Source: Octopus bimaculoides (taxonomy: Eukaryota). From it: a stretch of 64,000 bases of DNA. The notes under the pieces were generated by a model, which made no database searches, was not told the origin of the DNA, and saw only the letters and a program-made list of their open reading frames with translations. Position 1 is the stretch's first letter. Each line of letters begins with the position of its first letter. The DNA lies in the NCBI RefSeq assembly GCF_001194135.2, contig NC_068981.1, positions 9,047,508 through 9,111,507 on the forward strand. Reading direction: 5' to 3'. The position numbers were made by a program, and so were the translations under genes. Shown here one piece after another: positions 981 through 23,553 of the stretch.

Positions 981-1090
981 CTTTCAATTAAAGCAATAAT
1001 AATGTTATTAATGTTTACAGATTGTTGCAATTCAGCACAGGCCCTCAAGAAACCATTCAGAGTCTGAAGATGGAATTCATCAGGGAAGAC
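981..1090 (-). CDS. VPS35: VPS35 exon 8 ([37 protein letters not shown]); the gene continues beyond the left edge
   Basis: ttgtag acceptor, gtgagt donor, 110 nt. Matches human [37 protein letters not shown]. Confidence 0.96.
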
Positions 1091-1854
1091 CTACAATGAC
1101 AACAGAAATAAAGATTAATTTATAAAATGTGTTGGTGTTTCTCAGGCAACTTGGTTGGATTTTAAGAAGATAACAGGGTAATTCCTTTAGTAGGATAGGT
1201 AAGAGGGAAAGATCATCATAATCGAGAGAAAATATATATTTGAACTTTTTTATTTTATTTTTGTTTTCTCTCATCTTCCACCCGACCTATCCTACTAACA
1301 ACATTACCCAGTTATCTTAATAAAATTTGTAAAAGATTCTTTTAAATAAATAAAATTCAGTCATCATTCAGTTAAATTCATAGCTCTTAATTAGTTTATT
1401 TTATTCCAGTTTAATTAAGGACAGTGGTTAGGGTAGATTCATTAGGCTCAGAAAAGAACTTTTTTTGTGGTTTCTGCTTCACAAACTTATGTTCTGAGCT
1501 CAAATCTCATTCATGTCAACTTTGCTTTTCATTGTTCTGATGATGATGATGATGATGATGATAGAAAACAGTTTTAATAACTGTCTACAGATCTGTTAAG
1601 AATCACTAAATATAGTAATTTACAGAACAAAAACACTTGAATGAATAATGAAGAGTGGCCAAGAAGTTTAACTTAAAACGGATGCAGAAACAATGACTTA
1701 GAAATAATGGATGACATTTGGATCTGTCAGGAAATATCAATGTAAACATTGGGGAGGATGAGTCACAAAAAGGTAACGTTTCACAAAGGTCTCTTTCTAC
1801 AGAAACAACATCAAAGAGCCCCCCCTCCCACTGCTTTTGTAAACCAATTTGACA

Positions 1855-2070
1855 GGCTTCTGGAGAATTTTGTTATACAACTGGCACCCGTGCCAGTGGC
1901 ATGTAAAAGCACCCATTATACTTTTGGAATTGCTGGAACTAGGAAGGGCATCCAGCCATAGAAACTATGCCAAATCAGACTGGGGTCTGATGCAGCCCCT
2001 CGGCTTACCAGCCCTAGTCAAACTGTCCAACCCATGCCAGCATGGACAATGGACGTTAAATGATGATGAA
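1855..2070 (+). mobile_element. RTE-tail short copy
   Basis: aggaagggcatccagccatagaaactatgcc...caacccatgccagcatgg...gttaaatgatgatg. Confidence 0.8.
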
Positions 2071-2181
2071 ATATATTTGATTTGATATAATATTTTGATC
2101 AATATGTTCCGCACTGTGATTAACCGATTTCAAATAATTGTTTCTGTGCAGCAATAATGTAATCAAATGAAGAATTCTTAC

Positions 2182-2262
2182 CTGTATAATACACTCCATG
2201 ATGTATTCTTGGGCAATGGCATCACGGCAACTCACAACCTGTTCCAAAATGCCAGGCATCAC
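2182..2262 (-). CDS. VPS35: VPS35 exon 7 ([27 protein letters not shown])
   Basis: attttag acceptor, gtaaga donor, 81 nt. Confidence 0.95.
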
Positions 2263-2644
2263 CTAAAATAGGAAAATTTCAGCTGCCAGTGATAACCTTT
2301 TCGCAAAAACAAAAGAGGTAATTTTCATATATTTTTTTAGAAAATTCTTAGTTTTCTTTGTTCCAAGAAAACTGACAGAAAGAACATATCATTTATTTTG
2401 GCTTATTTTAATTTCTTAACAGACTTTTTCTCGGAATTTGGACAATTGTATAATGTTAGATTTAAGTATGGTTTAATTTCAGTAATCAAACAAGAACCAG
2501 TGTCTTCAATTCACGTCCAACCCATGTCAGCATGGAAATCCAACATTAAATGATGTTCATGATGACATTGGAGTTTTGACAGCTGAATGTCCGAACTGCA
2601 GGTCATTTCAGCCTGAAAGAAAAAGTGTTAAGTAAGTTGCTACA

Positions 2645-2850
2645 TAAAAAAGCCCCTGTGCTGGGGCCATGTGAAGGGCACCCAGTGGAGCACTCTGTAA
2701 AGTTGTTGGCATTAAGAAGAAGGGCATCCAACTGTAGAAACCCTGCCAGCACAGACAACTAGAACCTGATGCAGCTCTCTGGCTTGTCAGCTACAGTCAA
2801 ACCATCCAACCCAGCATGGAAAACGGGCATCAAATGATGGTGATGACTTT
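2645..2850 (+). mobile_element. RTE-tail short copy
   Basis: Same conserved tail, ending in aatgatggtgatga. Confidence 0.75.
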
Positions 2851-2891
2851 ACCCATGAAACAAAACATGAAGCTGTATTAAGTATTCACAA

Positions 2892-4105
2892 CCATCATCA
2901 TCATCATTTAACGTCCGTTATCCATGCTGGTATGGGTCGGATGGTTTGATCAGGGCTGGTAAGTTGAGGGGCTGCACCAGATTCCAGTCTGATTTGACAT
3001 GGTTTCTACAGCTGGATGCCCTTCCTAATGCTAACCAAGAGTGTAAAGGGCACTTTTACGTGCCACTGGTACAGGTACCACTTGCACAACATCAGTATCT
3101 ACCACAACAATGATTTCGCTTGAATGCTGAAGGTCTCAGTCATTAATCATTGCCTCCAAGAGACCCAATGCTTGAAATGCACCTTTTACGTGCCACTGGC
3201 ACAGGTGCTAGTTACATGACCTGGCATCAGCCACCTGGCCTCCATGAGGCCCAACGCTTGAAAGGTGCTTTTCACGTGCCACTAGCACGGGTGCCAGTTA
3301 TGTGACACCAGCATTGGTCACAATTACAATTTCACTTGGCTTGACAGATCTTCTCAAGCATGGCATATTGCCAAGGGTCTCAGTCACAAGTCAGTGCCTC
3401 CGTTCGAAGATCATGCTTCATCACCTCATCCAATGTCTTCCTGGATCTACTCCTTCCACAATTAAAGATTGGCACTTCTTTACACAGCTGTCCTCATCCA
3501 TACCAGTGCAGTTATCTCTTTTGCACACCACATCTGATGCCAAACTTTTCTATCAAGATGCTTACACTCTGTCGTACATACCACTGACATTGCACATCCA
3601 GTGAAGCATGCTGGCTTCATTTCTTTCAAGCCTACATGTCCTCAGCAGTCACAGCCCATGTTTCACTGCCGTGTAACATAGCTATTTGCACATAGGTATC
3701 ATACAGTCTATCTTTCATTCTGAGGGAGAGGCCCTTTGTTGCCAACAGAGGTAGGAGTTCTCTGAACCTGACCTAGCCTACACTCTCAGAGCATCCACAT
3801 CCACTACTGACTTGGTCACCTAGATAAAGGAAGCTATTACCCACTAGCTTACCCCACTGGCATTTGATGGAGTCTATTTTCTGTACACTTTAATGTTTAT
3901 TGTACCTGTACACCTTCCACACACAAAAACCAGTTTCCTTATTAACCTTCCTCTGATAACTGCTGCACATTTTATGTGTCCATCGCTTACACAAGGTACA
4001 TCTTGTGGAATTTCTACCTACACCTCTTCTATAGATTGAGCAAGGCCATCTACCTGAAGGCATTAGTGATTTGTCTGCTTTCCTACTTACTAAGACTTAT
4101 TAATT
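2892..4105 (-). mobile_element. 5'-truncated RTE LINE (PHD-bearing family) in VPS35 intron 6
   Basis: (CAT)n tail, hairpin modules, RT C-terminal remnant, and a decayed PHD (GRWPCSI..RCTLCKRWTHKMC) near 3930-4060. Confidence 0.85.
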
Positions 4106-4445
4106 GTAAAAATAAACCACAAACAAAAAACAACAATATTAATGGCAATCAGATATAGTCATTCAACAATGCTAAATCACCTCATCCAAGTATCGGTAAG
4201 ATGAAGGTATGTAATTAAATTCAGCCTTAATTAATTTAGTACAGAAAGTAATATTTGTTTGTGTTGGACAGTTAACTAATATTTAAAGCCAGACTTGATA
4301 CGTGGGTGTGAACCTAAGACCAACTTGTATGACTGAACGTAGAATTTTTTTTGAAAGGAGACAGGAGTTATTACATAAATAACTTTTATCAAATGAAGCA
4401 ACAAGAAACAATTCTCTATTAAATAAAAAAAAAAAAAAACATTAC

Positions 4446-4662
4446 CTTTTTATATTTGTCCACATCAATTGTTTCTAATTGACTCAAGCGAACGAGATTG
4501 GTTCCAACCAAGATACGCAATTCTCGTCTCTCTTGCTCACGTTTGTCTTTATCACGAGAATGGCCTTGGTGTTGCATGCGGACCCATAATTTATTCATTT
4601 CAGAGAAATTCAGCAGGATGAAGTCTATGGAATCACGTATAGACCCATAGTCTCCCTCACCA
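4446..4662 (-). CDS. VPS35: VPS35 exon 6 (..[63 protein letters not shown])
   Basis: ttttag acceptor, gtaatg donor, 217 nt; seen in ORF 4419..4718. Confidence 0.97.
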
Positions 4663-4849
4663 CTAAAAGAAAAAAAATTGAAAATTTTTAAGTTCTTTAT
4701 CAAAAGGTTTTGTTTCAAACCAAATGGTTTTGGTTTTGCTTTTTTTATTTCTTAATCCAGAGACTAACAATAACAAGTGAATCACTCTGTCTCTTTACAT
4801 ACCTGTCCCCTCTGTTATATGCTAACCTCTTACCTGACACACAGCTACT

Positions 4850-5080
4850 TCCCCTCGATTCTGCTCCCTCTCTCTCTCATCTGAGAGGTCTTTGTCTTGC
4901 AAGCCATTCGGCAACCCTGCTGGTGCTGGGGCCACACAGAAAGCACCCAGAACACACTGTAAAGTAGTTGGCATTAGGAAGAGCAACCAGCAGACAATAG
5001 ACCCGGGTGTAGTTCTCTGGCTTGCCAAATCATCCAACCCATGCCAGCATCAAAAACAGACATCAAATGATGATGATAAT
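4850..5080 (+). mobile_element. RTE-tail SINE-like copy
   Basis: gctggggccacacagaaagcacccag..gttggcattagg..caacccatgccagcat..gatgatgat. Confidence 0.75.
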
Positions 5081-6844
5081 GTATGTATGTATATCATCAT
5101 TATTTACCATTTATCTTCCATACTGGCATAGTTCATCAAGGTCCAATGAGCAGGGCTATTTTCTCTAATGCCTGCTTTGGCAAGGTGTCTCTACACCAAT
5201 CATTTTACAGAGGGTACCTTTTTTTCTTTTTATGGCACTGGCACTAATGAAGTGACCATGTACCTCACAAGATTAATATTCCCCTTGACTAAGTAGAGGT
5301 ACAGTAAAGCACAAAGTAGCTTTATTCTAGGTGTTGAATGGTTGAAAGAAGGGACAGGAAGAGGTTTCTTGCAACAGGGCTGATACATGCCTACCTTATA
5401 TTATAGAAAAGTAGGTGGGAGTAATTAAGGCTGAAAACGATAAAAATTGGGAGCAACAAGGTGTGGGAGTGAGTACTCAAGATAAATAGGGGAGAGACAG
5501 AAGAACAGGAAGGGTAGATGGGTGGGTAGAGAGTATGCAGACATGTTGATGATGATGATGATATCCATCATCATTTTACATTTGCATTTTCCTGCTGACC
5601 TAAGTTAGACAAATCAGTGGTTATTATTCATAAATTTACGACCTTCCTAGATGAGATCCCCAACTATTTTTAGAATGGTTTCTTCAGCTGGACGTCATTT
5701 TTAATGCCAATATTTTACAGAGTTACTCGATCCATTTTATCAGGCTCTCAGAATAAGAGAGGCTGTCTTGTCTCAGGCAGATCTAAAGACACCCCACTCA
5801 CTACCATATCTTGTCTCTATTCAATGTAACATGACAAAGAGGAGGGATAGAAGAGTGATGAGAGAGAATTAGGATCAGAAGAGGATGGAAAAGAGACCAA
5901 AGTGGAAGAAAAAAAGGGATCAAGACTGAAAGGGGACAAAGGATAATGTAACATTTAAAAAAAAATGTAAGTAGTTCTTAACTTTTCATTTCTGCTGAAA
6001 CTATATATAGAGTCTGATAAAGGCAAGCAGGGTAAAACTTCAAAGTCACTGTCAACTGCTTCTTTATAAAAGTTTAATAAATATTTGCGTAATCCTTCAG
6101 TTTAATGTTAAATTGTTTTTACATATAACAACATCAAAAAAATAAACAATCCACACACATACAGACACAATATAAGGAGTGGCAACATACTGGAATAAAG
6201 CTTTGCAAACAAGTAGTAATTGAAAGCCAAGCTCTAGAGTACCCTGTCAAAAATGGTCTTAATAATTAATCATTTACTCCAACCAATCCTGCATTAATCA
6301 TCAAACAGTAAATGAAGAAGACTTACTTTCTTTCTCTGCCATCTACATGCTTTGGGCTCCAAACCTCTTGATTGTTGGCAGAATTTCTAGAAAGCAATAA
6401 TCAGAAATTGACTGAGAATGATTCCAAAAATGATGTTTTGTAATATTACAGTTCATAGTTTGTCTGAAAGTTATTAAAATTTCATAGAATATTGACAAAT
6501 AGTGGGGGGGGGGTCATTTGATGAGAGGTTTAGTGATGGGTTCTAGGAGTATATCATCGGATGAGCCCTTCCTTTTAAGTTCATAGGAAGTGATTTGAGG
6601 GAGATTTGTCTCCTATTTCAAGTAGATTAAGCCAACACATTCAGGTTGCTTTGTTGAATGAGTGACTACAATAAAGTCATCACAGAAATCAAACAAACTG
6701 CCTGCCCTGGGGATGCAGTCAGCAATGTTTATGCATTGATGAGATTTAATTTGTTAATCTTACAATTAAGGTGGGGAGCTAGCAGGAATCCTTACCACAC
6801 TGGACTAAAGGCTTAGCGGCATTTCTTTGACTTCAACATTCTTG

Positions 6845-6915
6845 AGTTCAAATGCCACTGAGGTTTTCATTGCTTTTCATCCTTTCGGGGTTGATAAAAT
6901 GAGTACGAGTTGAGC
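6845..6915 (+). mobile_element. Deu/Nin-domain SINE fragment
   Basis: gttcaaatgcc (B-box) followed by cttttcatcctttcggggttgataaaatgagtac. Confidence 0.65.
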
Positions 6916-6954
6916 ACTCAGGTTTAAATTGTTGGCTTTTGTCCTTATTGCCGT

Positions 6955-7125
6955 CTAACGTCTGCTTTCCATGCTGGTATGGGTTGGACAGCTTGACTGA
7001 AAACTGGTAAGCCAGGGGGCTGTACCAGATTCCAATCTGATTTGGCAAGGTTTCTATGGCTGGATGCCCTTCCTAATACCAACCACTCTGAGAGTGTAGT
7101 GGGGGTTTTCTGTATGCCATATGCC
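6955..7125 (-). mobile_element. RTE-tail short copy
   Basis: Reverse complement of the conserved tail. Confidence 0.8.
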
Positions 7126-7261
7126 AACATATGAAACCAGTATTTCATAAACAATGCAGAATTTCTATTTGAAAATAATATTTGGAGGTTTAAAATATAT
7201 ATTTCATCAAATATAAATATTTCTTTACAAAGTGATCCAATCAAAAGAACATAAATAATTA

Positions 7262-7549
<288 letters not shown>

Positions 7550-8926
7550 TCAAATATCAATCACAATAATTAGCTATAACAGCAGATTGCAGCTTCACTT
7601 GTCCATTTCAACTTTTACATCCCCTAAGGATATATATCATCACTGATTAATGTCTGCTTTCCATGCTGGCATGGGTTGGATGGTTTGACTGATAACTGGT
7701 AAGCCAGGAAGCTGCACCAATAATTATACACACACACACACACACATACATATATATAACCTATACAATATATAAGGTTTTGAATTTATCAACTTCTATT
7801 CAGATTTTTTTTAAAGAAAACATTTCCTCGCTGAAGTAACCAGCAAAATGTCTCTGTGACACATGCCTTCTTCACTTGGATTTGAAAGAGTAAAGTATTC
7901 AAGACAATGGGAAATGTGTATTGTGATATTCATTCCTTTTCCAAGGGTAGCATGCAGTAAATAGAGTAAACTACATCTAAGAATCAAAACCATAGCGAAA
8001 AACCTGTTTTACATGTTTTTCTCATTGACAGAATTAATATTGTGCTTTTGTACAATCAAAATATTACCAAATGTAACAAAAAAAAAAAAGGCTCATACAT
8101 TTTCAGGGAATTATTTGAAAAATGGGATCTTTTCTATTTGGCTGCCAAGGTTTCAAAAATTAAAGTTTATTGAAAATTTTAAAATTTGGTACATTAATGC
8201 ATTTTTCCAAGCTGAATTGCTGGAGATATTTCACTTTTCCAGAAAAATTTAAAAAAAAAAAAGTTATAGATCTTTAAAGTTTGACATTTTTTACCCAGTC
8301 AGGAAGCAGGATTTGGAAACTGTCATTTTCTTTTGTCACTATCCTAAAAATAGCACATGTTGTCAATATTTGTATTCTACATGCGAAAAATGAGTAAACA
8401 ACTTGTCTTTTGTAGTTTTAAGCATTCAATATGCATTTAATGTGATCTCCATTATAGATGTGAGGTTACCGGAGCTTGCTGCCATAATCAGGCAGAACAG
8501 TAAAATTTCCAGGCGGGTAAAACAGTAGAACAGGTGGTTTCAATATATTTGTCAACACAGGTTTTCTCGCAGACAAAAGAGTTCTCATATTCAGCTTGTT
8601 ACTATGGAAACAGGCATGCATGTGTCTGCGGCTTACGATTGGCTAAAATTACCCAAAATTTTCAAACTTTAATTACTAATAACTCTTTATTTATTGATTT
8701 ATAGCAAAAGTGATTTTCATGGCATTGATCAGCTTATAAAAGTGTATCATTATACTGAATATGAAATCAATGTGAACAGAAATTGAAATTAGCAGCCAAA
8801 CGGAAAAGATCCCAAAAATGTATAAATTTAGAGGAATAAATTTCTTAAGTCCCTAACAACATTTTAAAGAAAAACTAGAATCCAGTCATTTACCCACAAA
8901 TCACTTGAAAAGGAAAGAATACTTAC

Positions 8927-9050
8927 AGGCGTGGCACTATATTGCCAGCATATTGTACAAGTTCATACAAGTCAGCAACTTTTCGACCTTTCTGGAACTC
9001 TTCTACAAGATAGAGCTCCAAATGACGCAATTCATCAGAGATGGCCATAT
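8927..9050 (-). CDS. VPS35: VPS35 exon 4 ([42 protein letters not shown])
   Basis: 124 nt, gtaagt donor, contains the conserved PRL(YL) motif. Keeping the frame forces the acceptor to be TG at 9052-9051. Confidence 0.93.
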
Positions 9051-9703
9051 CAAAGGAAAGTCAAAGAAAAACACAACCATAGGCTTAGAGCTACATTTAG
9101 AGCTTCTCATATAAGAAATAAGAAATCACAGCAAAAAAAAAATAATTCTATTTAGCAATTAGTTTTATTTTTTCTCTTTTTACTTGTTTCCGTCAGCCAT
9201 GCTAGGGCTCTACCTTCAAGAATTTTAATCAAATGAATCAACCCCCAGTACTTACTTTTTTAAAGCCTGGTGTTTATTCTATCAGTGTCTTTTTGCCAAA
9301 CTGCTAGGTTACAGGGATGTAAACACACCAACATCAGTTGCCAAGTGGTGGAGGGGACAAACACAGACACAAAAGCACACACACACACACACAGATACAC
9401 GACAAGCTTCTTTCAGTTTCCATCAACCAAATCCATGGCTGTAGTGGAAAACACTTGTACAAAGCGCCACATAGTAGGACCACTCGGCCATGCCTCTATC
9501 ATCATTTTACTGATTGGAGTAGAGTATGATAAAAAGATTTCACAAAAACACTGACATTAAATTCATTAAGCACTGAATTTATCAGATATATTGATTAATT
9601 GGTTTTTAAAAAAAATTAATGCTTTTAATATGACAGCTCATTATTCTATGAACAGTCAGAGGTAAGACAAATATAAAAGGTGACAAACATTTAAAAAGGA
9701 TAC
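9051..9703 (-). other. VPS35: U12-type (minor spliceosome) intron 3 of VPS35 with GT-TG termini
   Basis: 5' end GTATCCTTTTT. Branch-site-like TTTTCTTTGAC at 9070-9060, with the branch A 10 nt from the exon. The intron ends in ctttcctttg. Confidence 0.85.
9175..9490 (-). mobile_element. CORE-type SINE with internal (CA)n, inside the U12 intron
   Basis: Reverse complement of the family seen at 28895-29232. Confidence 0.7.
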
Positions 9704-9800
9704 AGAGCTCATAATAGGTCTTTGGAGACAATAAAGATGTCCTCAGCTCTCCCAGCATGTTTGAAGCATGCTTTAAGCCTTCCATTAATTTTCCTTTGTC
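9704..9800 (-). CDS. VPS35: VPS35 exon 3 ([32 protein letters not shown])
   Basis: tttag acceptor, 97 nt, followed by the U12-type donor GTATCCTTT. Near-identical to human [32 protein letters not shown]. Confidence 0.96.
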
Positions 9801-10789
9801 CTAAATATTAAAAAAAGAAAAAAAGGGGCCATAGTAAGCAATCACAGTCTATCCATATTTTGAATCCAAGGAACTAAAATTCATCAAATTGTTTCTAGTT
9901 TCAGATTTATTCCATTTCTAACATTAGTTTCTCAGGGTTAAGTTGTAGAAATATCTTTTGTTATAGATATTCAAGGAATTTTAGAGCTTTTTAAGGTGGA
10001 GAATATCTCGAGTTAAAAACATGTTAATAAGCAGTGCAATAATCAAGATGCCCTTCCTAATGCCAACCACTTTTCAGAGTGGATTGGGTACTTTTATACA
10101 TGACACCAACACCAAGTTCTGAAATACGGAGACCATTCATTAAAATATTGTTTGTAAAGAGAAATGACAAATTAGTCTTCTCAATTTCTGACAACTCATT
10201 ATTCCTGGGACAGTGAAAGTGTAAATTTGTAACTGGAAAAGGAAACTATTTGGATTGATGAGGAACAAACAGAAAGAAAAAGATGGCATCTTTTGGCTAG
10301 AATAAAGAGTGAAACTAGCTTGCAAAGATGATGTCAACTAGACAGGAACATATCTAAAGTTGTTTCCCTTTACCTACAAATAATCAAACTTCATTTCCCC
10401 TGGGAATGTAAATTAATTTTGTGAGATTAATTCTAAATTTCATAAAATTATCTCCCCACTTCTGTGGGATTTAATATCAATTACCACTAATCTTGTTTTC
10501 TTCCTCTTAGAAAATTTCATTTGATTATGAATTTTTTTTTTTTTACATGCATCATTCTGTAGATCCTCCACCCACCTCTGTTAGGAGGTGTTGATAATTA
10601 GGAACATGTATCCTGCTCATGTTGATATATTTTATCAATGTTAGTAAGGTGAAAGGTTAACAAAAGGATGAACTATGTCACACGTGTTAACAAGTCAACT
10701 ATATTTAATTAAAACTATTTAGTTCCCATCTCAAAGTTCAAATCATGCACAACTCAGCAGCTTTTTCAACTGACTTTAAAACAAAAATC

Positions 10790-13330
10790 ATCATCATCAT
10801 CATCGTCATTTAATGTCTGTTTTCCATGCTGGCATGGGTTGGACAGCTTGACTGAGGACTGGCAATCCAAAAGACTGCACCAGGCTCCAATCTGATCTGG
10901 CAAGGTTTTTACAGCTGGATGCCCTTCCTAATGCCAACCACTCCTAGAGTGTAGTGGGTGTCTTTCATGTGCCACCAGCACGGGGGCCAGTCAGGCGGCA
11001 CTGACATAGACCACACACAGATGGTGCTTTCTATGTGCCACCAACACTGGCATTGGCCACACTCCAATGGTGCTTTCTACATGCCAGTCAGGTGGCACTG
11101 GCATCGGCCACGACAACGATTTCACTTGACTCAACAGGTCTTCTCAAGCACAGCATATTACCCAACAATTAAAGGGTACTTTTAAACAGGCCAGTTATGC
11201 AACACTGGCATCAGTTCCCTCCTCTGTTAGGGTGTGACACTTCTTCACACAGCTGTCCTCATCCATACCCAACACATGACCATACCAGCGCAGTCGTCTC
11301 TCTTGCACACCACATCTCATGCTTCTTATGTCTAACTTTTCTCTCTGGGCGCTAACACTCTGTTGTGTATGCACAGACTTTACACATCTAGTGGAGTATA
11401 CTACCTTCATTCCTTGCAAGGTTACACATGTCCTCAGTGGTCACAGCCCATGTTTCACTGCCGTTTAGCATGGCTGTTCGTATACATGTGTCATACAGTC
11501 TGCCTTTCACTCTGAGCGAGAGGCCTTTTGTTACTAACAGAGGTAAAAGCTCTCTGTACTTTGCCCAGACTATTCTTATTCTAGCAGCTATGCTCTCAGA
11601 GCATCTAGCCCCCACTACTGACTTGGTCACCTAGGTAACAGAAGCTATCCACTACCCCTTCTTTTCCCCACTAGCATGTAATGGAATCTGTTTTCTGTAC
11701 ATCTTCGGTGTTTATTGTCCCTGTGCATTTGTCACACACAAAAACTATCTTTCCAGTTAACCTTCCTTTGATATTGCTGCACTTCTTATGCGTCCACAGC
11801 TTACACTGGGTACACCTTATGGAGTTTCTACCTACACCTTTTCTACAGATCGAGCAGGGTCATCTACCTGAAGGGATTTGTGATTTGTCAGCCTTCCTAC
11901 TTACTAAGACTTTGGTTTTTGCTAGATTGATTCTAGGGCCCTTCGATTTTAGACCTTGCTTCCACACCTAGTTCTGGTAATGACTCAGCAATAAGAGCAA
12001 GGTCGTCAGCATAGAGGAGATCCCAGGGGCAGCCATTCTTGAATTCTTCTGTTATTGCCTGGAGGACTATAATGAATAAGAGAGACCTGAAGACTGATCT
12101 TTGGTGAACCCCTACTTGTACCCGGAATTCTTCACTATACTCATTGCCAACCCTCACCTTACTGACAACATCCTTGTACAGCTCTCACCAACCACTTGTC
12201 TATCACTAGTTTCCGTAGTGACCACCAGAAAAGGGATCAAGGGACCCTGACAAAGGCTTTCTCCATGTCAACAAAAACCAAGTTCAGAGGTTTATCTTTG
12301 GCTAGGAATTTCTCCTGCAGTTGTCTTACCAGAAATATAGTATCAGTGGTGCTTTTCCCTGGCACAAACCCACTGCATCTCGTCTAAACTAACCCTCTCC
12401 CTAATTAATTGGGACATGACCCTCTCTATCACTTTCATCACCTGATCCAACAATTTGACACCTCTGTAATTATTCCTATCTAAAGCGTCACCTTTACCTT
12501 TGTAGCAGTTGACTATGGTGCTGCTATACCAGTCATTAGGTATGACTCCATGTATCACCTGGTTGACTATATGGGTAACTAGGCTACAGCCTACACTGCC
12601 AGATTTTTTAAGCATCTCTACAGTGATTCCTGATGGGCTGAGGGGTTTCCCTGTCTTCATACCCTCAATTGCTTTATCTACCAAGGTACTGTCAATTCGG
12701 ATAGCTGGTCCCTCTGTTGGGTCAACATTTGGCAGACTCTCTTTCTCACATTCATTCTCTTCATTTAGCAACCTTTCATAGTAGCATCTCCAAGTCTCTC
12801 TCTCTGCAGCATCATCATATGTAAGTGAGCCACCATCCATGCGGATACATTTCTCTCCTATGACATCACGATTCTCTCACACTGTCTTGCAATACAAAAC
12901 ACTTCAAGTCTCTAGTCCTCACGATGCAGAATATTGGTAAATTTTGTCCTATCTGCTTCCCCTCTGGCTAAGTACACCTGTCTCCTAGCTTCCCTTCTAG
13001 TGATCTGATACTGTTCCCTGCTACCACTGTTCTTCCAGTCCTTCCATGCCCGTTTCTTTTCTCTAATGGCCCTGTCAAATACATTGTTCCACCACCACAT
13101 TACCTTAGGTTGAGAGGGGACTTTGCACCAGCCACAGATCTGGTTAGTGGCCCTCAAGAGGTTGTCCTGTAGGAACCTCCAGTTGTCCTCCCCATTATAT
13201 GATGCTATATCCTCCTCTTTTTCATCAAAAGCTTCAAGTAATATGTCTCTAAATCCCTGTCCATTCAGAGGAGCCTTAAGCTTCCAGACCCTTCTTTTCT
13301 CTGCTGGTGAGGAACCTAGCAGAACCTCCT
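10790..13330 (-). mobile_element. Largest RTE LINE copy (linker, RT, PHD, C-terminus, modular 3' UTR); frameshifted and 5'-truncated
   Basis: YRGVKLLDQVMKVIERV, RVQVGVHQRSVFRSLLFIIV and LLYADDLALIA in ORF-track fragments; (CAT)n tail at about 10790. It ends roughly 90 bp from the VPS35 exon 2 donor. Confidence 0.93.
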
Positions 13331-13423
13331 CTCCACCTTACTTCAACAAGAACTGTAAAAAGCCATTGATATTTTACCACTTAGTTTTAGCAACAACAAA
13401 TGGAAATGGGAGAAGATATTTAC

Positions 13424-13525
13424 CAAACATCTTTTCATCTGAAAAGATTGACTCTTAACCACTTTTGTAGCTTCATCGAGAAGTTTTTCTTGCTCTTCCT
13501 GTGGTGATAATTGTGGTGTTGATGG
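13424..13525 (-). CDS. VPS35: VPS35 exon 2 ([34 protein letters not shown])
   Basis: tttccag acceptor, gtaaat donor, 102 nt. Matches the VPS35 N-terminus (human [28 protein letters not shown]). Confidence 0.96.
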
Positions 13526-13689: not shown

Positions 13690-13925
13690 AAGATGGAGGG
13701 GATGGAGTGACAGGTTATACATCCCAGAACAAATGGCATGTTTAGCCATGCCTCACAGACACGATTGCAAAGGTGTTGCCATGGATAGTGCAACAGCCAC
13801 CCCACCTGATGGAGCTCATTTCTCAGATGGGCTTCACGAATCCTGATTTGGCTGAGGAAATCAGCAGTGTGGGGTCTGAAAACACCTGAGGTCCCAATAG
13901 TGACTGGCACAAAATGGTAGCAGAT
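13690..13925 (-). mobile_element. Remnant of the restriction-like-endonuclease C-terminus of a CRE/NeSL-type non-LTR element
   Basis: HFVPVTIGTSGVFRPHTADFLSQI, then after a frameshift VAVA..IHGNTFAI. Resembles the F.P.A.ET.G..G / QRLSVAVQRGNA pattern. Confidence 0.5.
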
Positions 13926-14399
13926 GGTTGCACTTCTGTCCTCTGAAAAATTATGTTTAAAAGTTAGATATTTCCAGAAAAAGTTTTTAAAAATTTAATA
14001 CACTAAATCTGATGTTTTCTTTTCATGCTAAAACCAACCAAATTTCTTAGACTTACCCTGCCTCCCTTCCCCCATATTCCCCATTATATTATTTTAGAAG
14101 AAGTCCAAACATTAAAAAGAAAAATTGCCCTACAACAGCTGAATTACAATATAAAAACAACTTGTAAACCACATGACCTTTCTTAGAAACCCTCACAACT
14201 TGATACAAATATTACCATAAGATCTAGATTACAGCATTAACGATCATTGCTTAACATTCAGTTTGCATAATTATATTTAATTGAACATGTTATTATATAT
14301 TTGTTTTTCATAAACAAATCTGTCCTTAAATATCTTATGCACCCTGTATATACATACACACACACACATGTATATATATACATATATACACACACACAC

Positions 14400-15120
14400 T
14401 TCAGGGATATGATCTTGTTTGATATGCAGAAAAGGAATAGGTATCAATTCCCCTATGCTATACACACTGTAAGCTATGGACATACAAGACTATCAGAGAA
14501 TGTCAGCTTCATATGTGACAGATGTACTGGAACAATACAAACTATGAGCACACTGGAAACAGATCTCTTAAATACCTGGAAGGTCCACTAGAAATAGAAG
14601 GCAATATTTAATTAGCAGGGGAGGTGATTGCACGAAAAAAAAATATAGTAGCCAGTGTGTGAATAGGTTGGAGAAAGTTCAGAGAGCTGCTACTACCACT
14701 GCTGGCAACAATAGTCTTTTCTCACAGAGTGAGAAACAGATTGTATGATGCTTGTGTTAAAACTGTAATGCTACATGGAAGTGAGATATGGGCCTGGAAT
14801 GGAGAGGATTTTGAGAAGACTGGAGAAAAATAAAGCTAGCATGCTCTGCAGGATGTGCATAAACAACATAGCATAAATGTGCTGAAAGAAAAAACTGGAA
14901 ATAAGAGAAATCGGAAGAAAGAAGAAGACTGCACTGGTACAGACATGTGATGCATATGGATGAAACACAGGTGTATAGAGAAGTGTCACTGAATGTGGAA
15001 AGAGCTTAAAGAAGAGGGAGACCCAAGAAGACAACAAAGTGGTGAAGACTGACCTCAAAACCATAAACCTCATGAAGGAGATGACAAGCCAGATGTGGTT
15101 CTTGAGAAGACCTGCTGACC
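14400..15120 (+). mobile_element. Degenerate RTE fragment (PHD family)
   Basis: FICDRCTG, plus decayed RT C-terminal sequence matching 11300-11700. Confidence 0.7.
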
Positions 15121-15404
15121 TCAATGAAACTCTGGTTCTGGAATCATCTCACCGTTATCCATCTTTCATTCTTAACACTGTCCTCTCCATCTTTTACATT
15201 GCTCATCCTCCTCAACCAACAAACAATTTCTTCTCCACCCACCATGCATTTCCTCCTCCCCCTTTCACTATATTTGTCCCACACTCTTACAATGTACCCA
15301 ACCACATCATCTCTTTACCTCTTGCTTTTGCCCATCTCTCTCTCGTTTGCATTATCATTAATATTAATACTTATCAGCTGCTCTTCAGTGTGGCAGAGGA
15401 CAGG

Positions 15405-15860
15405 CATTAGGGTGGCCACCAAGCTGAAAGTGTACCAAGCAGCTGACTGCCTGCACTGCTATATGTTTGCAAGACATGGATGGTTTACCAACGCCATGCC
15501 AAAAGACTAAGCTACTTCCATGTGAACTGCCTGAGAAAGCTGTTGAAAATTACCCGGCAAGACACGGTCGCAGACATGGAGGTCCTCTCTTGAGCTGATC
15601 TGCCAAGCCTTTACATACTGCTGAAGAGAGCACAAGTCAGGTGGGTGGGCCACCTTGTTCGAATGCCTGACACACAACTACCCAAAAGACTGCTATACAG
15701 TGAATTAGTGGAAGGCAAGCACACTCAGGGTGGACAGAAAGAGCACTTTAAGGACACACTCAAAGCTTCACCAAAGAGCTTTGAGATCAATGCTAACACC
15801 TGAAGAAATGCGAGCACAAAAGACTGCCCCACCTGGCAAGGCTGCACCAACATCTCAATA
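15405..15860 (+). mobile_element. RTE (BovB-like) ORF C-terminal remnant
   Basis: KLKVYQA..., QVRWVGHLVRMPDTQLPKRLLYSEL. Confidence 0.8.
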
Positions 15861-16139
15861 CCTGTTCTTCATTATATTCACTCTCTCACCCATTTCCTAT
15901 CACAATCTCTGAACACTCCCCCTCAACACCCTTGCAACCTCTACCCACCCACATTTCCAATTCTGTCCCCACTCTTACTCACCCCTTACTGTGAGGGTCT
16001 ATGCTGACATTTCATCACCACTAGATTTTCATCCATTTTCAATCCCACCTAAATCACGCCTATCCTCTCTTTCATAATGTCAGTAGTTGTGTAGCTCCCC
16101 TACAGCAAGAAACCTGTTCTGTTCTGATCCCTTCTCTCT

Positions 16140-16385
16140 CACCTCTCTACGGTAGCCCGACTCAGTCAAAGGGTATCTTGGTTGTGCAGGCTGCATAGCA
16201 ACCTCACTAGTGCTGGTGTAACAAATAAAAAAAAAATGTACCTAACATACACTGCAGGGTAGCTGGTGCTAGGAAGGGCATCCAGCTGTAGAAATGATGC
16301 CAAAGCAGACACTGGACCTGTTAACTCCCTTCAAACTCTCCAACCTGTACCAGCATCATCAAACATGAACATTAAATAATGACAA
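16140..16385 (+). mobile_element. RTE-tail SINE-like copy
   Basis: aggaagggcatccagctgtagaaat...cattaaataatgac. Confidence 0.65.
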
Positions 16386-16431
16386 TATACACATTTATGA
16401 AAGATGTGTACATGTATATACAACATAAATA

Positions 16432-17567
16432 CAGAGAGTGTCAGCTATTTGAGAACAAAACTTAGGAAATTTAAGTGGCCCAAACTTTAAATATCTTCAC
16501 TGTTTTCAGCACCGACTGGAAGTTTTGAATCTAACGTAGATGATGAAAAGATATGTCATTCTTGTTACCTTGACTACCAACTACTCTGTGATTGCAACCA
16601 TCTTAAATGTCACTAGGTCTTTCATGTTTAGGGTCAGAAAAGAGCTCTTGGCCTCTGAAAGGAATATATCTTCTGTGGCCAAAAGAAGAAAACATTCTTG
16701 ACCATCAGATGCTGTCAGAAGAGTCGAGTTTGTCCACAAAGTTTGGGGTGTCATCAGTGATAATCCTAGCAAGTCGATGAGGACCAATGTCAATCATTTC
16801 CATCTCAGAGTCAATGATGTGCAGCGTATGTGATAAGAAGAGGAAAGTCCATGCCCAATAGGAGCTGGGATAACCCACGTGATCCATTGAAGCTCTTGCT
16901 GAACAAACTCAAGCACTCCCAGGAGTCCAACATGTTCTTCACAGATGAGAACTGTGCCCAAAACCAAAAAAGTGAACAAAAGAAATAACAGCTGGCTCTT
17001 TTCGTCCCCCCCACACACACACACACTGAAGCCACCATGTTTTTATCATCTGTGTTGGTCGTAAGCAATGAGGACTGTACCGGATCACTTTTTCCTGTAA
17101 GGTCTTAGAGTAAATGTAGCAGTCTTCAATGAGACAGTTGTCAAACCCTGGATCGAGGGAAGTGTTTGTGGGGTGGGGGGGGGCAGTACATGTTCCAACC
17201 TTTCACACAGCTTGTACGACTCGGAAGTGGTTATTCGAAAATTTTCCTGATCATGTTATCCTTAAAATTTGGTCTTCCAGCACTTCGGATTTAACCCCCC
17301 CCCCAATCACTTCGACTATTGCGTCTGGAGAGTCGTTGAGGAGATCAACAAGGACTCATTGATGTCTGCTATTGGGGACATTATGGCCAACATGAATAAA
17401 GATCACCTGATTAACGCATTTAGTCGCTTCAGAATCCGTATTGAATGGCTTTCGCTGTGAGCCTCTAAGAATATGTATACCAAATTCTGTAATAAATATA
17501 TTAAAGTTTCGAATACTTTTGTTTTCCTTAAATTAACATTTTGTTCTTAACTAGCTGACACACCCTT
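16432..17567 (+). mobile_element. Tc1/mariner (maT-like) DNA transposon, decayed, both TIRs present
   Basis: TIRs of about 28 bp (cagagagtgtcagctatttgagaacaaaa / ttttgttcttaactagctgacacaccct). Transposase pieces LLNKLKH..FFTDE and DYCVWRVVE..MANMNKDHLINAFSRFRIRIE. Confidence 0.8.
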
Positions 17568-18390
17568 AATACATACATACATGTATATAAACATAGATAA
17601 ATATATAAACATACATAAATACATCCTTATAATGCCTATACACAGACAAACATATATACATATTTAAATTTAAACATTTATATATATATATACATGTATA
17701 CACATAAATATTATATATATATAAGAGGGTATGTGCTTGTAACATTGTTTTGGTTTTTTAAAGTGAGTTCTATAATCGTGAATTGCTTGCGCCGTACTGG
17801 TGTGTGTATGTGTAATTTTGCTGACTAATAATATTAATTAGGAAATGCCTTGTTTTATAAGAATGTCTTCTACAATTTCAGAGAGTAATGTTGATTTTAA
17901 AGTGATTCAATAAAAAGGAAAACTAAAGATCAATGAGAGAGTTTAAAATAATAAATTAGGTTAATCTGTGGAGAAACAGTTGGCAGTGAGGGAATTCTGT
18001 TTAAAGACCGGTCGGGAATTGCAACAATTAAATCAATAGAAACGAAGAAGACTCGTTCGGTGGTAGAAGTAACATTATATAAGTGTTTACGTTCTAATCA
18101 TGGTCCATTCGGTATGAGTCAAGTGAAGAAGACTAAACATGGACAGAAATCTATTAGGATTAGGATTTGTAGCAGAAAATATTTGGAATAATAATAATTG
18201 TGAGATGTGTCAATGTTGGGACTTGAGGATGACTTTGCATTGCTCCAGTCTGGTCTCTCATTAAAATGGATTTCTAACATTATGAAGAGGGTAAAGAATT
18301 AACCTATTAGTGTAGATATTAATGTTGAAAAAGTGATTAAATTAAGAATAAAATGAAAAGATCCAAAGTTAAAAAAAAATTGTGGAAAGG

Positions 18391-18426
<36 letters not shown>

Positions 18427-18612
18427 TGGTGCGGAGGAAAGGATTAGACATAAAACAGATTAAATAGCAACGGAGGCAGCAATAATAAGAATAAGAATAG
18501 AATGTTATATTGTGGTAGATGGAGGACATAAATAGAAAAGGAAAAGAAAATGAGAAAATATTTCCATTAAAAATATTTCAAAGTAAACAAATGGAAGAGA
18601 AACAACACCCAC

Positions 18613-18615
18613 CAT
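18613..18615 (-). CDS. VPS35: VPS35 coding exon 1 (initiator ATG only)
   Basis: Minus strand reads catcATG|gtgggt. Exon 2 starts in phase 0 without a Met. The site lies in the CpG-containing region facing ORC6. As I recall, human VPS35 exon 1 also contributes only the ATG. Confidence 0.75.
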
Positions 18616-18894
18616 GATGAAATCATGTGACTAATTTACTCGGCAGGACGAGATTATATCAGCAGTCGGGTTTCCAATCTAAAATCTAAAATAAAATAAA
18701 ACATTTAGATCGGGTGATTTCTATAAGATAGTTATAGGTATCGAAACAAAATTATTATCCAACTGATATTTATTAAATAATAAAAATATATTAATTTTTT
18801 TCCCATCATTCAATATTTCGCGGGAAATCTAATGTGTTGGAGGTGAACAGCTGTGTTTTAGCGGGGAAACAGTTTTATTGAAATCACTGAGAAA
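18616..18894. promoter_or_regulatory. Bidirectional promoter and 5' UTRs shared by VPS35 and ORC6, with E2F sites
   Basis: 279 bp between divergent ATGs. TTTCGCGGGAAA at 18816-18827 and GCGGGGAAA at 18861-18869. CpGs are locally retained. Confidence 0.8.
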
Positions 18895-18947
18895 ATGCTT
18901 CAGGTCTTGGGAACAAAACTCGGATTAACAAGTGTTTCAGTCCTCAA
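18895..18947 (+). CDS. ORC6: ORC6 exon 1 (MLQVLGTKLGLTSVSVL)
   Basis: First ATG after an in-frame TAG, gtaaat donor, phase 2 joins exon 2 in frame. Resembles human IGRLAPRLGL. Confidence 0.75.
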
Positions 18948-19057
18948 GTAAATATATCTTTTTTTTATATATCGAAATTGTTGACGTTAAAATATATTCA
19001 TTTATTTCTTATTTAGATTCTAACGTAAATCTATTAAAACGATCAATCTTATTACAG

Positions 19058-19205
19058 ACATGCTAATGAAATCTGTCGCAAGATGGAAAGTGGTCCAAAT
19101 GTAATTTCTTTGTCATTTCTTCGATTAAGCCAGTCCTGTAAATGTGTCATAGCTTTGGATCTGGCAGCCAACAAATTTGGATGTCATCTTAAAGAATCGG
19201 ACAAG
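19058..19205 (+). CDS. ORC6: ORC6 exon 2 (KHANEICRKMESGPNVISLSFLRLSQSCKCVIALDLAANKFGCHLKESDK)
   Basis: ttacag acceptor, gtaggt donor. ALDLAA corresponds to human CLDLAA. Confidence 0.85.
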
Positions 19206-19730
19206 GTAGGTGAATCGAAATGATATTAATCTCTTCTATATTTTTCTTCATTTTTGTAAGTCATATATTATTTTGTTGGCGACATACAACAAATAAATAC
19301 AGACGTCCATCCATTCTAGGAGCTGGAAAGATAATCTATAATCAGAGATTTTAAAATCAAATAATGCCATAAGCACGACCAACAATGGGGTGCTCTGTGA
19401 CTAACTCGAGAGTCCTCGAGCTGATAAATATCAGCCCCGTCTTTTATTGAGAAGATTTTACATTGGTGTAATTACTTCTTCGCCATGGTGTTGGATCAGT
19501 TTCTTCGCCCTCCCCTTCTTTTCCAATCCTCCCGTGCCCCACTTCCATTATAAGCGAACTCTGTGATGTCCTAAGAATGTGTGGCATTCCTTCTACTCAT
19601 TCTGCCTTAGTAAATTATTTGTTTTTAATCTTTATTATCCATGAAGCCCTGATATGTTTACTTCATTAAGTATTTAAAGTAGGGGCGATCTTTCGATACT
19701 AATCCAATTTTTTTTTCTCTTTTAATCCAG

Positions 19731-19894
19731 TCGATGGCCATAAAACTGTCAGGCTTGAATAAAAAAGCATATTTAAATTCTTTCAAAACTGTTGAAAGTT
19801 TGTTGGGAGAACAACAAAAATCCTCCATTCGAGAACTTTGTGTACAGTTTGGGTGTACGGATATCGCTGATGTGGCCCAGGAAACACTCAACAG
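19731..19894 (+). CDS. ORC6: ORC6 exon 3 (SMAIKLSGLNKKAYLNSFKTVESLLGEQQKSSIRELCVQFGCTDIADVAQETLN)
   Basis: atccag acceptor, gtaaat donor, 164 nt. Matches human IKLSGLNKETY...IRDLAVQFSC. Confidence 0.95.
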
Positions 19895-20767
19895 GTAAAT
19901 AGTAAATACCTGTGTATTGTTTTGTTTTTTAAGTATTAAAAAAGTAAATACTATTGTTTTTTGTTTTATGCCATCCGATGTACATTTTGATGCATCTTAG
20001 AGATTTATCATCACGAGTTAAGCAAATACTGTCACTGTTGAGTTCATACTATTGAAACATGTTTGGAGTTGTCTCTCTTTGGGAAATAATATAATTGAAA
20101 TATTAGTCATTAACTGATATGGTTTTAACTGGAGAAGCATGATCTCCAGGGGCTACTGCAGAATCATCGCACCTCTCCTGAAAAAATTATTTCGGATTCC
20201 TACGTTTTAGATGTTGGAGATTATGAATATGCAAACTCCATCCTCTATAGGACCACCATATTTAGTTGGCAAATATAGTTTATGAATAAATGGACAGGGA
20301 TAAATAGATAGACAAATAAATAAATAGATGAAAAAGTTAAAAATTTTAAATTGGGGAGGGGGTGAAACTAAACTCTGCTTGCGAAGACCTGTTGAGGCAA
20401 GTGAAATCGAAATCCATATTTCTGGGTTGATAGAAGTTTGAAAAAGGCATGGGTGAGCGAAAGATGAGAAATGGATGTAGTGAATGGTAGATAAGGGTGG
20501 GAGGGTATCCAATGGTACACATACGATATATATAAATATCTCATTTAGATTCATCCAGAATGAAGTAATGTGGCTTGATGCTAAGTTGTTTTATAATCTC
20601 TTTTTTCATTCCTTCATTGTAATTGAGAGATTGTTGCCAATAAGAATATAATTCTCTGGTAATGTTTGGAATTGAGAATTGCAGATTTACTGACAGCAAT
20701 AATGGATGCAAAAGACTCATTAAAACTCCACAAAAGCTAAGATGTCTTTGATGTCTTTTTATTTCAG

Positions 20768-20857
20768 GTACCAGTCAGCTATGGTAAAGAATGGATGTGC
20801 TGATATTGACTTCAAATCAACCCTTTTCTTGGCTGCTGCAGTTGAAGCTGCTTGTCT
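20768..20857 (+). CDS. ORC6: ORC6 exon 4 (YQSAMVKNGCADIDFKSTLFLAAAVEAAC)
   Basis: tttcag acceptor, gtaagt donor, 90 nt. Corresponds to human DLDLSRPLFTSAALLSAC. Confidence 0.92.
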
Positions 20858-20889
20858 GTAAGTTGCTTGAATTAGCTTTTATCTTTTAC

Positions 20890-21085
20890 TTGTTTCACTC
20901 ATTGTGGCCATGCTGGGGCATCTCTTTGAAGAATTTTCACTTGAATGAATTGAATCCCAGTACTTTTAATTTTAAAGCCTGGTACATCATATTCTATCAG
21001 TCTCTTTTGCCAAATTGCTTAAGTTACTTGGGATGTAAACACACCAATACCAGTTGTCAAATGGCAGCGGGGAACAAACACAGGC
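20890..21085 (-). mobile_element. CORE-type SINE 3' part
   Basis: Same family as 9175-9490. Confidence 0.65.
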
Positions 21086-22365
21086 ATGAAAACATTTATA
21101 TATATATATATATATAAATTAAAATTTAGAGGTAATACTTGACAATTGTAAGCACCTGTGTATGCCAGCTCGTGGTTCAGGTGAAAGAATAAATTGTAAA
21201 TCCCAAAAATAACAACAAAACTACAAAGGATTCCGCGGTACACGTGTTTCAAGTTTTATATGTGTATAATTTACAATGTAAAGCTATCCTCAGCCGCAAA
21301 ATTATTTCTCTCCCAGGATATTATACCACATCGGCGTTGAAGTAGGAAGAAAGGTGTGATGTAAGAGGTGAAGATCCTTTCGGTATTCTGTATAGAACTA
21401 TACCTCGTATAATTCTCCACCCAGACATAATTTCTCCGGTCCTCTGAAAACCGTCCATACCTTGCCACGATTCTACACACTGATAAACAGTGATTAAGAC
21501 AATTATCATCTCAAGTGTTGTGCTGTGCCTTAATTTAATTAAGAAATGATTGATGATGTAATCAATTGTTGGCTATTAGGTTATTGTGGGGTATTCTGGC
21601 AGGATTATCTGCTAATTTAAGTTGATAATCCAATAACAACCTTCAGATATGGTTTGAGATAAATAATAGTAACAGATTTGGAATTTAAACTAGCAGAAGT
21701 GTTACTGTAGAGTCTCTAGCAGGGTGCCATGAAATGGCTTCTCAGTCTACTGCAGGTAAATATTATTGATTGAAGAGAGTAAAAGTGATTAGCATCAGTT
21801 TTGCCTAAGAATATTGGTAATGCCAAGGAAATGATTCGTGCTCAAAACTAGTCTCCATAGAAGCTTAACAAATGTAGATGTCTTTTAAAATTTGGATATT
21901 TCTTGGAATAGACGTTTTATTAATAAAAGTTTTTTTTTTGTGTTATTGATCTCATTCCAGTATATTATTGGTATACCAACTGACAGAATTAGAAAGTAAG
22001 TTAGTCAACATGAACAAAGGCTTGTCAGACAGTTCCGAAAGTGGCATTGGTTGATCTGTTACTGTTTTTCATACCTGTAGTAACATTAATGACCATTTTG
22101 AAGTCCTCCAAGACTGGGAGAAAGAAGTGATGAAGTTACCTTAGGCATCACTTCAGAATCTGCTGAAAACCTGTGGTTTACCTGTTTTCTATGGCTTCTG
22201 TTGTTCAATTATATAGTTCATATTAAAGAATGATTGTTTGGAATTATTCAGGATGTTGTGTATGTTTGTTTCAGAACAATAATTGACAAATGAGAGTTTA
22301 GAGAGTAAAAAAAAAATACCATCTGAATCAGTGAAACAATTCTTTTTCTTGTTATTTATTTTCAG

Positions 22366-22478
22366 AAAATATAAATATAAAATTGACCGACTGAAATTGC
22401 GAGAGACTTGCAGTGTGAAGAAAGCTGTTTTTCTCCGACTTGTTGAACAACTTGTAAAATATGCAGAGGAGATAAAAA
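22366..22478 (+). CDS. ORC6: ORC6 exon 5 (KYKYKIDRLKLRETCSVKKAVFLRLVEQLVKYAEEIK)
   Basis: tttcag acceptor, gtaagt donor, 113 nt. Corresponds to human KLKVDKNKM..SGVKKAIFDRLCKQL. Confidence 0.93.
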
Positions 22479-23320
22479 GTAAGTTGAATGACCAGATATC
22501 TTATTTTTGACGATTCATTTGAAATTAGGTCACAATAATCAGTTCAGCTTTTCGATTGTCATTTACCTGCATCTTAATGAGTTTTTATTGGTCGTCTCTT
22601 CTATTTGCCTGCTTATTTTTATTTCATTAAAACTTGTAATTAAAGTGTTGTATTTCAATTGAAACTTTTTCCTATGTAGTTCAGCTTAAGGAATTCACAT
22701 GCTAAAAACCTATTATTCTACTGTAATCACCCCGCCCCCACTCCCCATCATCAGATAGAGCACCCTCAACTATTCTTTGACCCTATGCTGTGCACTCCTT
22801 GAAGCAACATGTTGAAGACAGCCTGGTTAAGCAGTTGGAGAGCAACCATCGAGATGAGCAGTAACTCCATTAGCATGGGGTCGAATTGGGTTCCATGAAC
22901 TACAGCAAAAGAAACCTGCCTAGGACACGTAGAGAGGGGACACTTTATTCCTGACAAACAGCCTCTTCCCTGCTGGTCCATTTATTTATTGCAGTGACTT
23001 TTATTCTTATTAATTATACTAACCCACTTCTACTGCTGACAAAGAAAATTTAGGGAGTTCTTACTCCTGCTGGCAGCAAATGGATTGTCAGATCATATAA
23101 TTGTATTTGAACAGTGACATTACACAGTAGCATTACATGGGCTTAAATACAGAAGATTTTTTTATAGTTGTGTTTGAAGAGCAATACCACATGGTAGTGA
23201 AACATGGCTATTGATTAGAGAAGATTTGTGAGGTGTACAAATAAATAGAACAAGCATGCTTGGCTACATGTGTAACATTTGTGTTTGTGAATGATGGAGC
23301 AGAAATTGGTTGAGAGAAAA

Positions 23321-23553
23321 GGCGGTGAGCTGGCAGAAGTGTTAGTACGCCGGGCGAAATGCTTAGCGGTATTTCGTCTGCCATTACGTTCCAAGTTCAA
23401 ATTCCGCCGAGGTCGACTTTGCCTTTCATCCTTTCGGAGTCGATAAATTAAGTACCAGTTACACATTGGGGTCGATGTAATTGACTTAATCCTTTTATCT
23501 GTCCTTGTTTGTCCCCTCTATGTTTAGCCCGTTGTGGGCAATAAAGAAATAAC
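23321..23553 (+). mobile_element. Full-length tRNA-derived Deu/Nin-domain SINE with a perfect target-site duplication
   Basis: A-box tggcagaagtgttag, B-box gttcaaattcc, core gcctttcatcctttcggagtcgataaa. 18-bp TSD aaattggttgagagaaaa at 23303-23320 and 23554-23571. Confidence 0.9.

Follow-up and report, generated by a model that had tools for sequence, protein, structure and literature searches.

Conserved ancestral microsyntenic pairs (CAMPs) are enriched in the 5'-5' orientation, keep that orientation and are separated by spacers of less than 1 kb (Irimia et al. 2012, PMC3514665). In human, VPS35 and ORC6 are head-to-head neighbours at 16q11.2, with bidirectional transcription (PMC6614138). 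Human VPS35 possesses a single CLEAR element that mediates activation by TFEB/TFE3 and the mutation of which lowers this activation (PMC6891082). In parallel, mouse Orc6l was found to be bound by E2F2, to have E2F motifs within +/-200 bp and to be derepressed in E2f2-/- cells (PMC3905855). In cephalopods, reorganization of the coleoid genome has been described together with some 275 ancient microsyntenies that were kept in Euprymna (PMC9023564). In Supplementary Dataset 1 of the same study (Schmidbaur et al. 2022), Vps35 and ORC6 are the first two genes of block 4475 in Euprymna scolopes, their orientation not being given, and this block is common to E. scolopes, Callistoctopus minor and O. 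bimaculoides (PMC9023564). The human head-to-head arrangement and the extensive rearrangement of coleoid genomes, on which the original prediction for the present locus had drawn, are thus both documented in the literature (PMC6614138 and PMC9023564, respectively). As for the deep conservation of the pair, full-text searches that named both genes returned no paper on it, the supplementary CAMP list lying outside these searches.

The window analysed here is a 64-kb stretch of Octopus bimaculoides DNA, positions 1-28615 of which are 100% identical to chromosome CM046601.1 of the same species (GCA_001194135.2). In the annotation of CM046601.1, the coding sequences of VPS35 and ORC6 begin at exactly 18615..18613 (-) and 18895 (+) and are separated by the 279 bp that extend from 18616 to 18894. 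The head-to-head arrangement is therefore already implicit in the public annotation of this species. Gene models, Pfam matches and public annotation all bear out the identity of the two genes and the distance of 279 bp between their divergent ATGs, as had been proposed from the letters alone. The coordinates of the features are collected in Table 1.

Table 1. Features of the VPS35-ORC6 locus in the window, and corresponding elements in other species (species named in the first column).
Feature	Position	Strand	Description	Conservation or remark
VPS35 start codon	18613..18615	-	entire coding part of exon 1; then donor GTGGGT at 18612..18607	
VPS35 exons 2-8	13525..13424, 9800..9704, 9050..8927, 7445..7263, 4662..4446, 2262..2182, 1090..981	-	overall 981..13525	
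VPS35-side island	18563-18640	-	opening 50 nt of intron 1, the ATG, then 25 nt upstream of it	Argonauta 84-86%; intron part O. vulgaris 100%
Palindromic E-box TCATGTGA, MiT/TFE CLEAR/M-box type	18623..18630		7 nt upstream of VPS35 ATG	invariant in three octopods
AT-rich spacer segment	18641-18795			Argonauta 55%; O. vulgaris 88%
E2F island	18796-18835		40 nt	Argonauta 80%; O. vulgaris 100%
Palindromic E2F-type site TTTCGCGGGAAA	18816..18827		67 nt upstream of ORC6 ATG, 200 nt from VPS35 ATG	inside the 18796-18835 island
ORC6-proximal spacer	18836-18894			Argonauta 44%; O. vulgaris 86%
ORC6 exon 1	18895..18947	+	53 nt of coding sequence, MLQVLGTKLGLTSVSVLK	start is the annotated start
ORC6 exons 2-8	19058-19205, 19731-19894, 20768-20857, 22366-22478, 24896-24964, 25502-25606, 27248-27258 (stop)	+	from splice sites and translation	
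SINE-like repeat of ~200 bp, example copies	715-908, 1880-2069, 2893-3072, 6952-7119, 10787-11026, 24584-24792, 26575-26782, 29606-29792, 34117-34370			
Head-to-head pair, O. vulgaris			spacer 277 bp between start codons	
Head-to-head pair, Argonauta hians			spacer 252 bp	ATG-only VPS35 exon 1 unannotated yet conserved
Head-to-head pair, scallop Argopecten irradians			spacer 988 bp	
Head-to-head pair, amphioxus Branchiostoma floridae			spacer 433 bp	
TCAYRTGA, amphioxus VPS35	-18 from ATG		TCACGTGA	ORC6 neighbour: yes
TCAYRTGA, scallop VPS35	-110 from ATG		TCACATGA	ORC6 neighbour: yes
TCAYRTGA, Lingula VPS35	-30 from ATG		TCACGTGA	ORC6 neighbour: no
TCAYRTGA, Haliotis VPS35	-15 from ATG		TCACATGA	ORC6 neighbour: no
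E2F-type 8-mer, scallop	28 nt from ORC6 ATG		952 nt from VPS35 ATG	
E2F-type 8-mer, amphioxus	145 nt from ORC6 ATG		276 nt from VPS35 ATG	weak: such 8-mers occur once per 2.2 kb in the locus
E2F-type site near ORC6, Blattella	-294			
E2F-type site near ORC6, Mactra	+42 of annotated start			annotated start itself probably too far upstream

The second exon of VPS35 lies about 5.1 kb past the ATG, follows a pyrimidine tract and CAG, and opens in phase 0 with codon 2 (CCA TCA ACA CCA...). O. vulgaris and Argonauta show no change in either the ATG or the donor that follows it. The gene runs past the left edge of the window, which holds only the N-terminal 305 aa of the protein; this peptide belongs to the Vps35 family (Pfam PF03635, E=2e-157, 526 bits, profile positions 1-290) and equals O. 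bimaculoides VPS35 P0280 save for one cassette exon. The latter, a 60-nt exon located at about 6386..6327 (-) in intron 5 and encoding NSANNQEVWSPKHVDGRERN, is present in the O. bimaculoides 'isoform X1' (P0280) and is not part of the standard alignment with other VPS35 proteins.

ORC6 comprises eight exons of 53, 148, 164, 90, 113, 69, 105 and 11 nt, and the donor junction of exon 1 (CTCAA/GTAAAT) keeps the frame into exon 2. The internal exon sizes of 164, 90, 113 and 69 nt that had been proposed are correct for the window sequence. The 250-aa product, equal in length to the annotated 250 residues, is 93% identical to O. vulgaris ORC6 and contains both ORC6 domains, PF05460 (ORC6; 39.4 bits against a cut-off of 22.2, E=8e-10) and PF21913 (ORC6_2nd; 87.6 bits against a cut-off of 27, E=8e-25), which are cyclin/TFIIB-like. 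The size of the 164-nt exon is kept in Octopus, Argonauta, Mactra and Blattella, and the 113-nt and 69-nt exons are merged into a single 182-nt exon in Blattella.

The introns of both genes had been predicted to be kilobases long and full of transposons. The first part is right for VPS35, whose introns 1-7 measure 5087, 3623, 653, 1481, 2600, 2183 and 1091 nt (0.65-5.1 kb), and only partly so for ORC6, with introns of 110, 525, 873, 1508, 2417, 537 and 1641 nt (0.11-2.4 kb). Concerning the second part, repeats occurring within the window cover 6-68% of those introns that have matches, but four ORC6 introns contain none, nor does the 279-bp spacer, and this part is only partly confirmed. In Pfam searches, the introns of VPS35 and of ORC6 showed no intact transposon ORF. 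An interspersed repeat of about 200 bp is present in at least 15 copies in the 64-kb window. It constitutes a SINE-like family, of which the O. vulgaris locus carries copies too, and it was recognised by neither ARAGORN nor Rfam. Rfam and tRNA scans of the whole window gave no matches. Among the longest stop-to-stop ORFs, several of which lie within VPS35 introns, the only Pfam matches were sub-threshold ones to zf-RVT (63018-63638) and zf-C2H2 (45684-46178), both downstream of ORC6, and no confident gene was observed from 27259 to 64000. Six N-gaps also fall in this part of the window, that at 53175-53856 being the largest, and the DNA at about 53-54 kb is very AT-rich; the O. vulgaris annotation has a 181-residue gene beyond ORC6, without Pfam match. 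Finally, a (GT)16 microsatellite is located at 18393-18424, about 190 nt into VPS35 intron 1.

VPS35 intron 3 (9703..9051, -) is a U12-type (minor spliceosome) intron with the donor T/GTATCCTTT. The same donor (GTATCCTC) is found at the same codon of VPS35 in Argonauta, sea urchin, Lingula, Haliotis, scallop and Capitella. The 3' end of this intron is TG in Octopus, CG in Argonauta and AG in the other species compared, and the intron 3 junction (YYEL/YMAISDEL) is demanded by the annotated VPS35 protein.

In each animal the genes around ORC6 or VPS35 were looked up, and every locus was rechecked by tblastn so as to catch genes that the annotation lacks. Eleven lineages were compared, absence of the pair being scored from 10-kb flanks; Ecdysozoa are represented by Blattella alone, and the matches listed included no VPS35 or ORC6 from a cnidarian or sponge. 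In the five genomes with the pair that were compared, the divergent orientation is kept and the start codons are 252-988 bp apart, which is below 1 kb throughout. VPS35 and ORC6 are non-paralogous genes whose orthologues are adjacent in cephalopods, scallop, amphioxus and human, as in other CAMPs. The pair was not found within 10 kb in six of the 11 lineages, namely Mactra, Haliotis (two assemblies checked), Lingula, Capitella, Blattella and sea urchin, though in Mactra antiquata both genes lie on one 48-Mb chromosome. This two-gene microsynteny has survived the reshuffling of coleoid genomes and was probably lost from many other lineages.

Other neighbours were observed in several of these loci. 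Lingula VPS35 is head-to-head with an adh_short dehydrogenase gene at a distance of 257 bp (extracted locus, 5324-9743 / 10001), and Blattella ORC6 with Mre11 at 696 bp (extracted locus, 7382-9304 / 10001). Just 3' of VPS35 are SYS1 in scallop (28437-31147), SYS1 and COX4 in Capitella (14249-14829 and 18421-19646) and COX4 in Haliotis (111813-119227), all in extracted-locus coordinates. There are hints here of a wider spiralian block ORC6-VPS35-SYS1-COX4; the window stops before the VPS35 3' end.

The 279-bp spacer is repeat-free and has a G+C content of 30%; the core promoters and short 5' UTRs of the two genes are presumably located in it. Since O. vulgaris is too near for footprinting, whole introns aligning at 84-92%, Argonauta was used instead. 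Over the region compared (window 12000-27000), the spacer is the sole non-exonic stretch that is still collinear with Argonauta. Only two conserved islands stand out between Octopus and Argonauta, with 80-86% identity versus 44-55% elsewhere in the spacer, and each of them is proximal to one of the genes. By comparison, ORC6 coding exon 1 is 68% identical to that of Argonauta, below the 80% of the E2F island. Another motif, the FOX-type GTAAACAA at 18583-18590, lies 23 nt into VPS35 intron 1 and is invariant in three octopods. It was dropped as a candidate, as it is conserved in octopods only and was not found in other phyla.

E-boxes with T/A flanks (TCAYRTGA, with a CACGTG or CATGTG core) are preferred by MiT/TFE factors and are of the CLEAR/M-box type. 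The palindrome TCATGTGA on the VPS35 side has the sequence of a CLEAR-type E-box near the VPS35 start, and such E-boxes recur beside VPS35 in four other phylum-level lineages. The pooled background of TCAYRTGA is one per 9.3 kb and the chance of an occurrence within 110 bp is 0.012 per lineage; its presence at no more than 110 bp from the VPS35 ATG exon in four of six independent non-octopod lineages is far beyond this. In Capitella, TCACGTGA is found about 50 nt before the donor of an apparently non-coding VPS35 exon 1, and sea urchin VPS35 has no TCAYRTGA within 1 kb and shows GCGCATGCGC instead. By analogy, octopus TCATGTGA may be the counterpart of the CLEAR element that functions in human VPS35. 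At 7 nt from the ATG it would probably fall either within the 5' UTR or directly at the start site, a position that is unusual though not unknown for a CLEAR element. In scallop, the 5' end of an RNA-derived contig lies 94 nt upstream of the VPS35 ATG and 9 nt past TCACATGA; this contig confirms a 94-nt 5' UTR and an ATG-only exon, with no further exon.

In octopods, amphioxus, Lingula, Haliotis, scallop and sea urchin, the ATG by itself makes up the first coding exon of VPS35 and a phase-0 intron comes next, frequently with ..caagATG/gtgagt as the surrounding sequence. In Capitella the ATG has apparently moved to exon 2.

Cell-cycle control by E2F is typical of replication genes, and an E2F site within a bidirectional promoter can influence the gene on each side. 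On the ORC6 side of the spacer, TTTCGCGGGAAA has the sequence expected of an E2F target (TTTSSCGS near the start site). The TTTSSCGSSAAA pattern has a single match in the 64 kb, versus 0.01 expected. E2F-type 8-mers are also on the ORC6 side in scallop and amphioxus as in octopus. As to lineages in which the pair is broken, the two classes of motifs follow their own gene: the E-box is found with VPS35 in Lingula and Haliotis, and E2F sites with ORC6 in Blattella and Mactra.

The age of the pair and the way in which it has been retained can be considered together. Because the same 5'-5' pair exists in amphioxus, scallop, three octopods and human, and because the two genes are consecutive in the Euprymna block, the pair appears to be older than the protostome-deuterostome split; it is most likely ancestral to bilaterians and was lost repeatedly. 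The original prediction, which had it retained since that split, is very probably right on this point. It had also stated that a pair unlinked in most intermediate lineages would suggest convergence, and by that criterion the survey, with the pair present in amphioxus, scallop and octopods and missing within 10 kb in six of 11 lineages, could be taken to indicate convergence. An independent origin of the adjacency in chordates and in molluscs would agree with its absence from the majority of the sampled in-between lineages, but the same partner, the same 5'-5' orientation and a spacing below 1 kb are shared by chordates, cephalopods and a pteriomorph bivalve, which makes at least three deep lineages. 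To re-make one specific oriented adjacency at random among some 2x10^4 genes would be far less likely than to lose it several times, and with three gains to be set against five or six independent losses such convergence is judged highly improbable. That the octopus 5'-5' adjacency is orthologous to that of human, amphioxus and scallop, taken jointly with the organization of the promoter region proposed below, is held with moderate confidence.

From its sequence, the 279-bp spacer is rather likely to be the divergent promoter region of VPS35 and ORC6, made up of two abutting gene-specific modules and not of one shared switch. The VPS35 module would tie retromer expression to nutrient and lysosome signalling through the MiT/TFE-type E-box TCATGTGA, the ORC6 module would place the other gene under the cell-cycle programme through the E2F site TTTCGCGGGAAA, and the poorly conserved AT-rich spacer would lie between them. 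The original prediction had seen a bidirectional promoter that couples the two genes. A single shared promoter that co-regulates both genes, the coupling being selected since the bilaterian ancestor, would account for the very short spacer (252-988 bp) in five genomes and for the purifying selection on it within octopods; moreover, the human locus is transcribed bidirectionally (PMC6614138) and 5'-5' conserved pairs have as a class an elevated co-expression (PMC3514665, PMC9023564). However, six lineages (Mactra, Haliotis, Lingula, Capitella, Blattella and sea urchin) are without the pair within 10 kb, and new head-to-head partners have been acquired elsewhere, adh_short by Lingula VPS35 and Mre11 by Blattella ORC6. 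In addition, the central spacer is unconserved, the islands are gene-proximal, belong to different factor classes and each move with their gene, and the VPS35 and ORC6 proteins have no known functional link. With the pair not found within 10 kb in six of 11 lineages, other partners and gene-specific islands, coupling as originally stated is not supported, and the shared promoter is considered rather unlikely. Where the pair is broken the motifs stay with their own gene, which favours two abutting promoters over shared coupling. It is also possible to imagine promoters that are physically interdependent, for example through a common nucleosome-free region or an E2F site that would also gate VPS35. 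Separation would then be costly, a link between retromer and replication licensing would have been kept for more than 550 million years, and new divergent partners (adh_short in Lingula, Mre11 in Blattella) would have made up for the loss of the pair in the lineages concerned; this appears unlikely. The true promoter of one of the genes could otherwise lie elsewhere, behind an unannotated upstream non-coding exon, the conserved blocks being splice or UTR signals. The seemingly non-coding VPS35 exon 1 of Capitella speaks for it, as does the fact that the annotated gene ranges used are CDS ranges, but the scallop RNA contig begins 94 nt upstream of the VPS35 ATG without an extra exon, an upstream exon of VPS35 would fall inside ORC6, and E2F sites and E-boxes are typical promoter-proximal elements. 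Such a location is thought decidedly unlikely. With two abutting modules, retention of the pair would rely on compactness, a harmless breakpoint having a target just a few hundred bases wide, and perhaps on one open-chromatin region common to the two promoters. Retention by a small breakpoint target is favoured because the elements are gene-bound, new divergent partners are readily formed and the proteins are not known to be functionally connected. Selection for co-expression of VPS35 and ORC6 would not be needed to explain it.

The VPS35-ORC6 locus is a compact two-gene neighbourhood that survives coleoid reshuffling, with 252-279 bp between the start codons in octopods. As pair-broken controls exist naturally in other phyla, it provides a test case for whether ancient divergent pairs are kept by shared regulation or by a spacer so small that breakage within it is seldom safe. 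That TFEB is linked to retromer was already known in human; the MiT/TFE E-box at VPS35 would be very old, since molluscs, a brachiopod and amphioxus have it beside the first, ATG-only exon. Current concepts are left unchanged by the pair.

Several described systems can be compared with this locus. The HSPD1-HSPE1 partners cooperate, are strongly co-expressed and are kept as a pair in nearly all species, whereas the functions of VPS35 and ORC6 are unrelated and over half of the sampled lineages have lost the pair. Block 4475 was catalogued as cephalopod-only, with eight genes over 778 kb, and its far older two-gene core was not singled out there (PMC9023564). The octopus locus has the same two orthologues in the same 5'-5' orientation as human 16q11.2, and its spacer is AT-rich (30% G+C), unlike a CpG island. 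Finally, in the same way as the 5'-5' class of CAMPs, VPS35 and ORC6 are unrelated genes that diverge from each other at less than 1 kb and keep their orientation across phyla. The pair fits this known class of conserved 5'-5' microsyntenic pairs and, though real and old, is a rather ordinary case of neighbouring genes.
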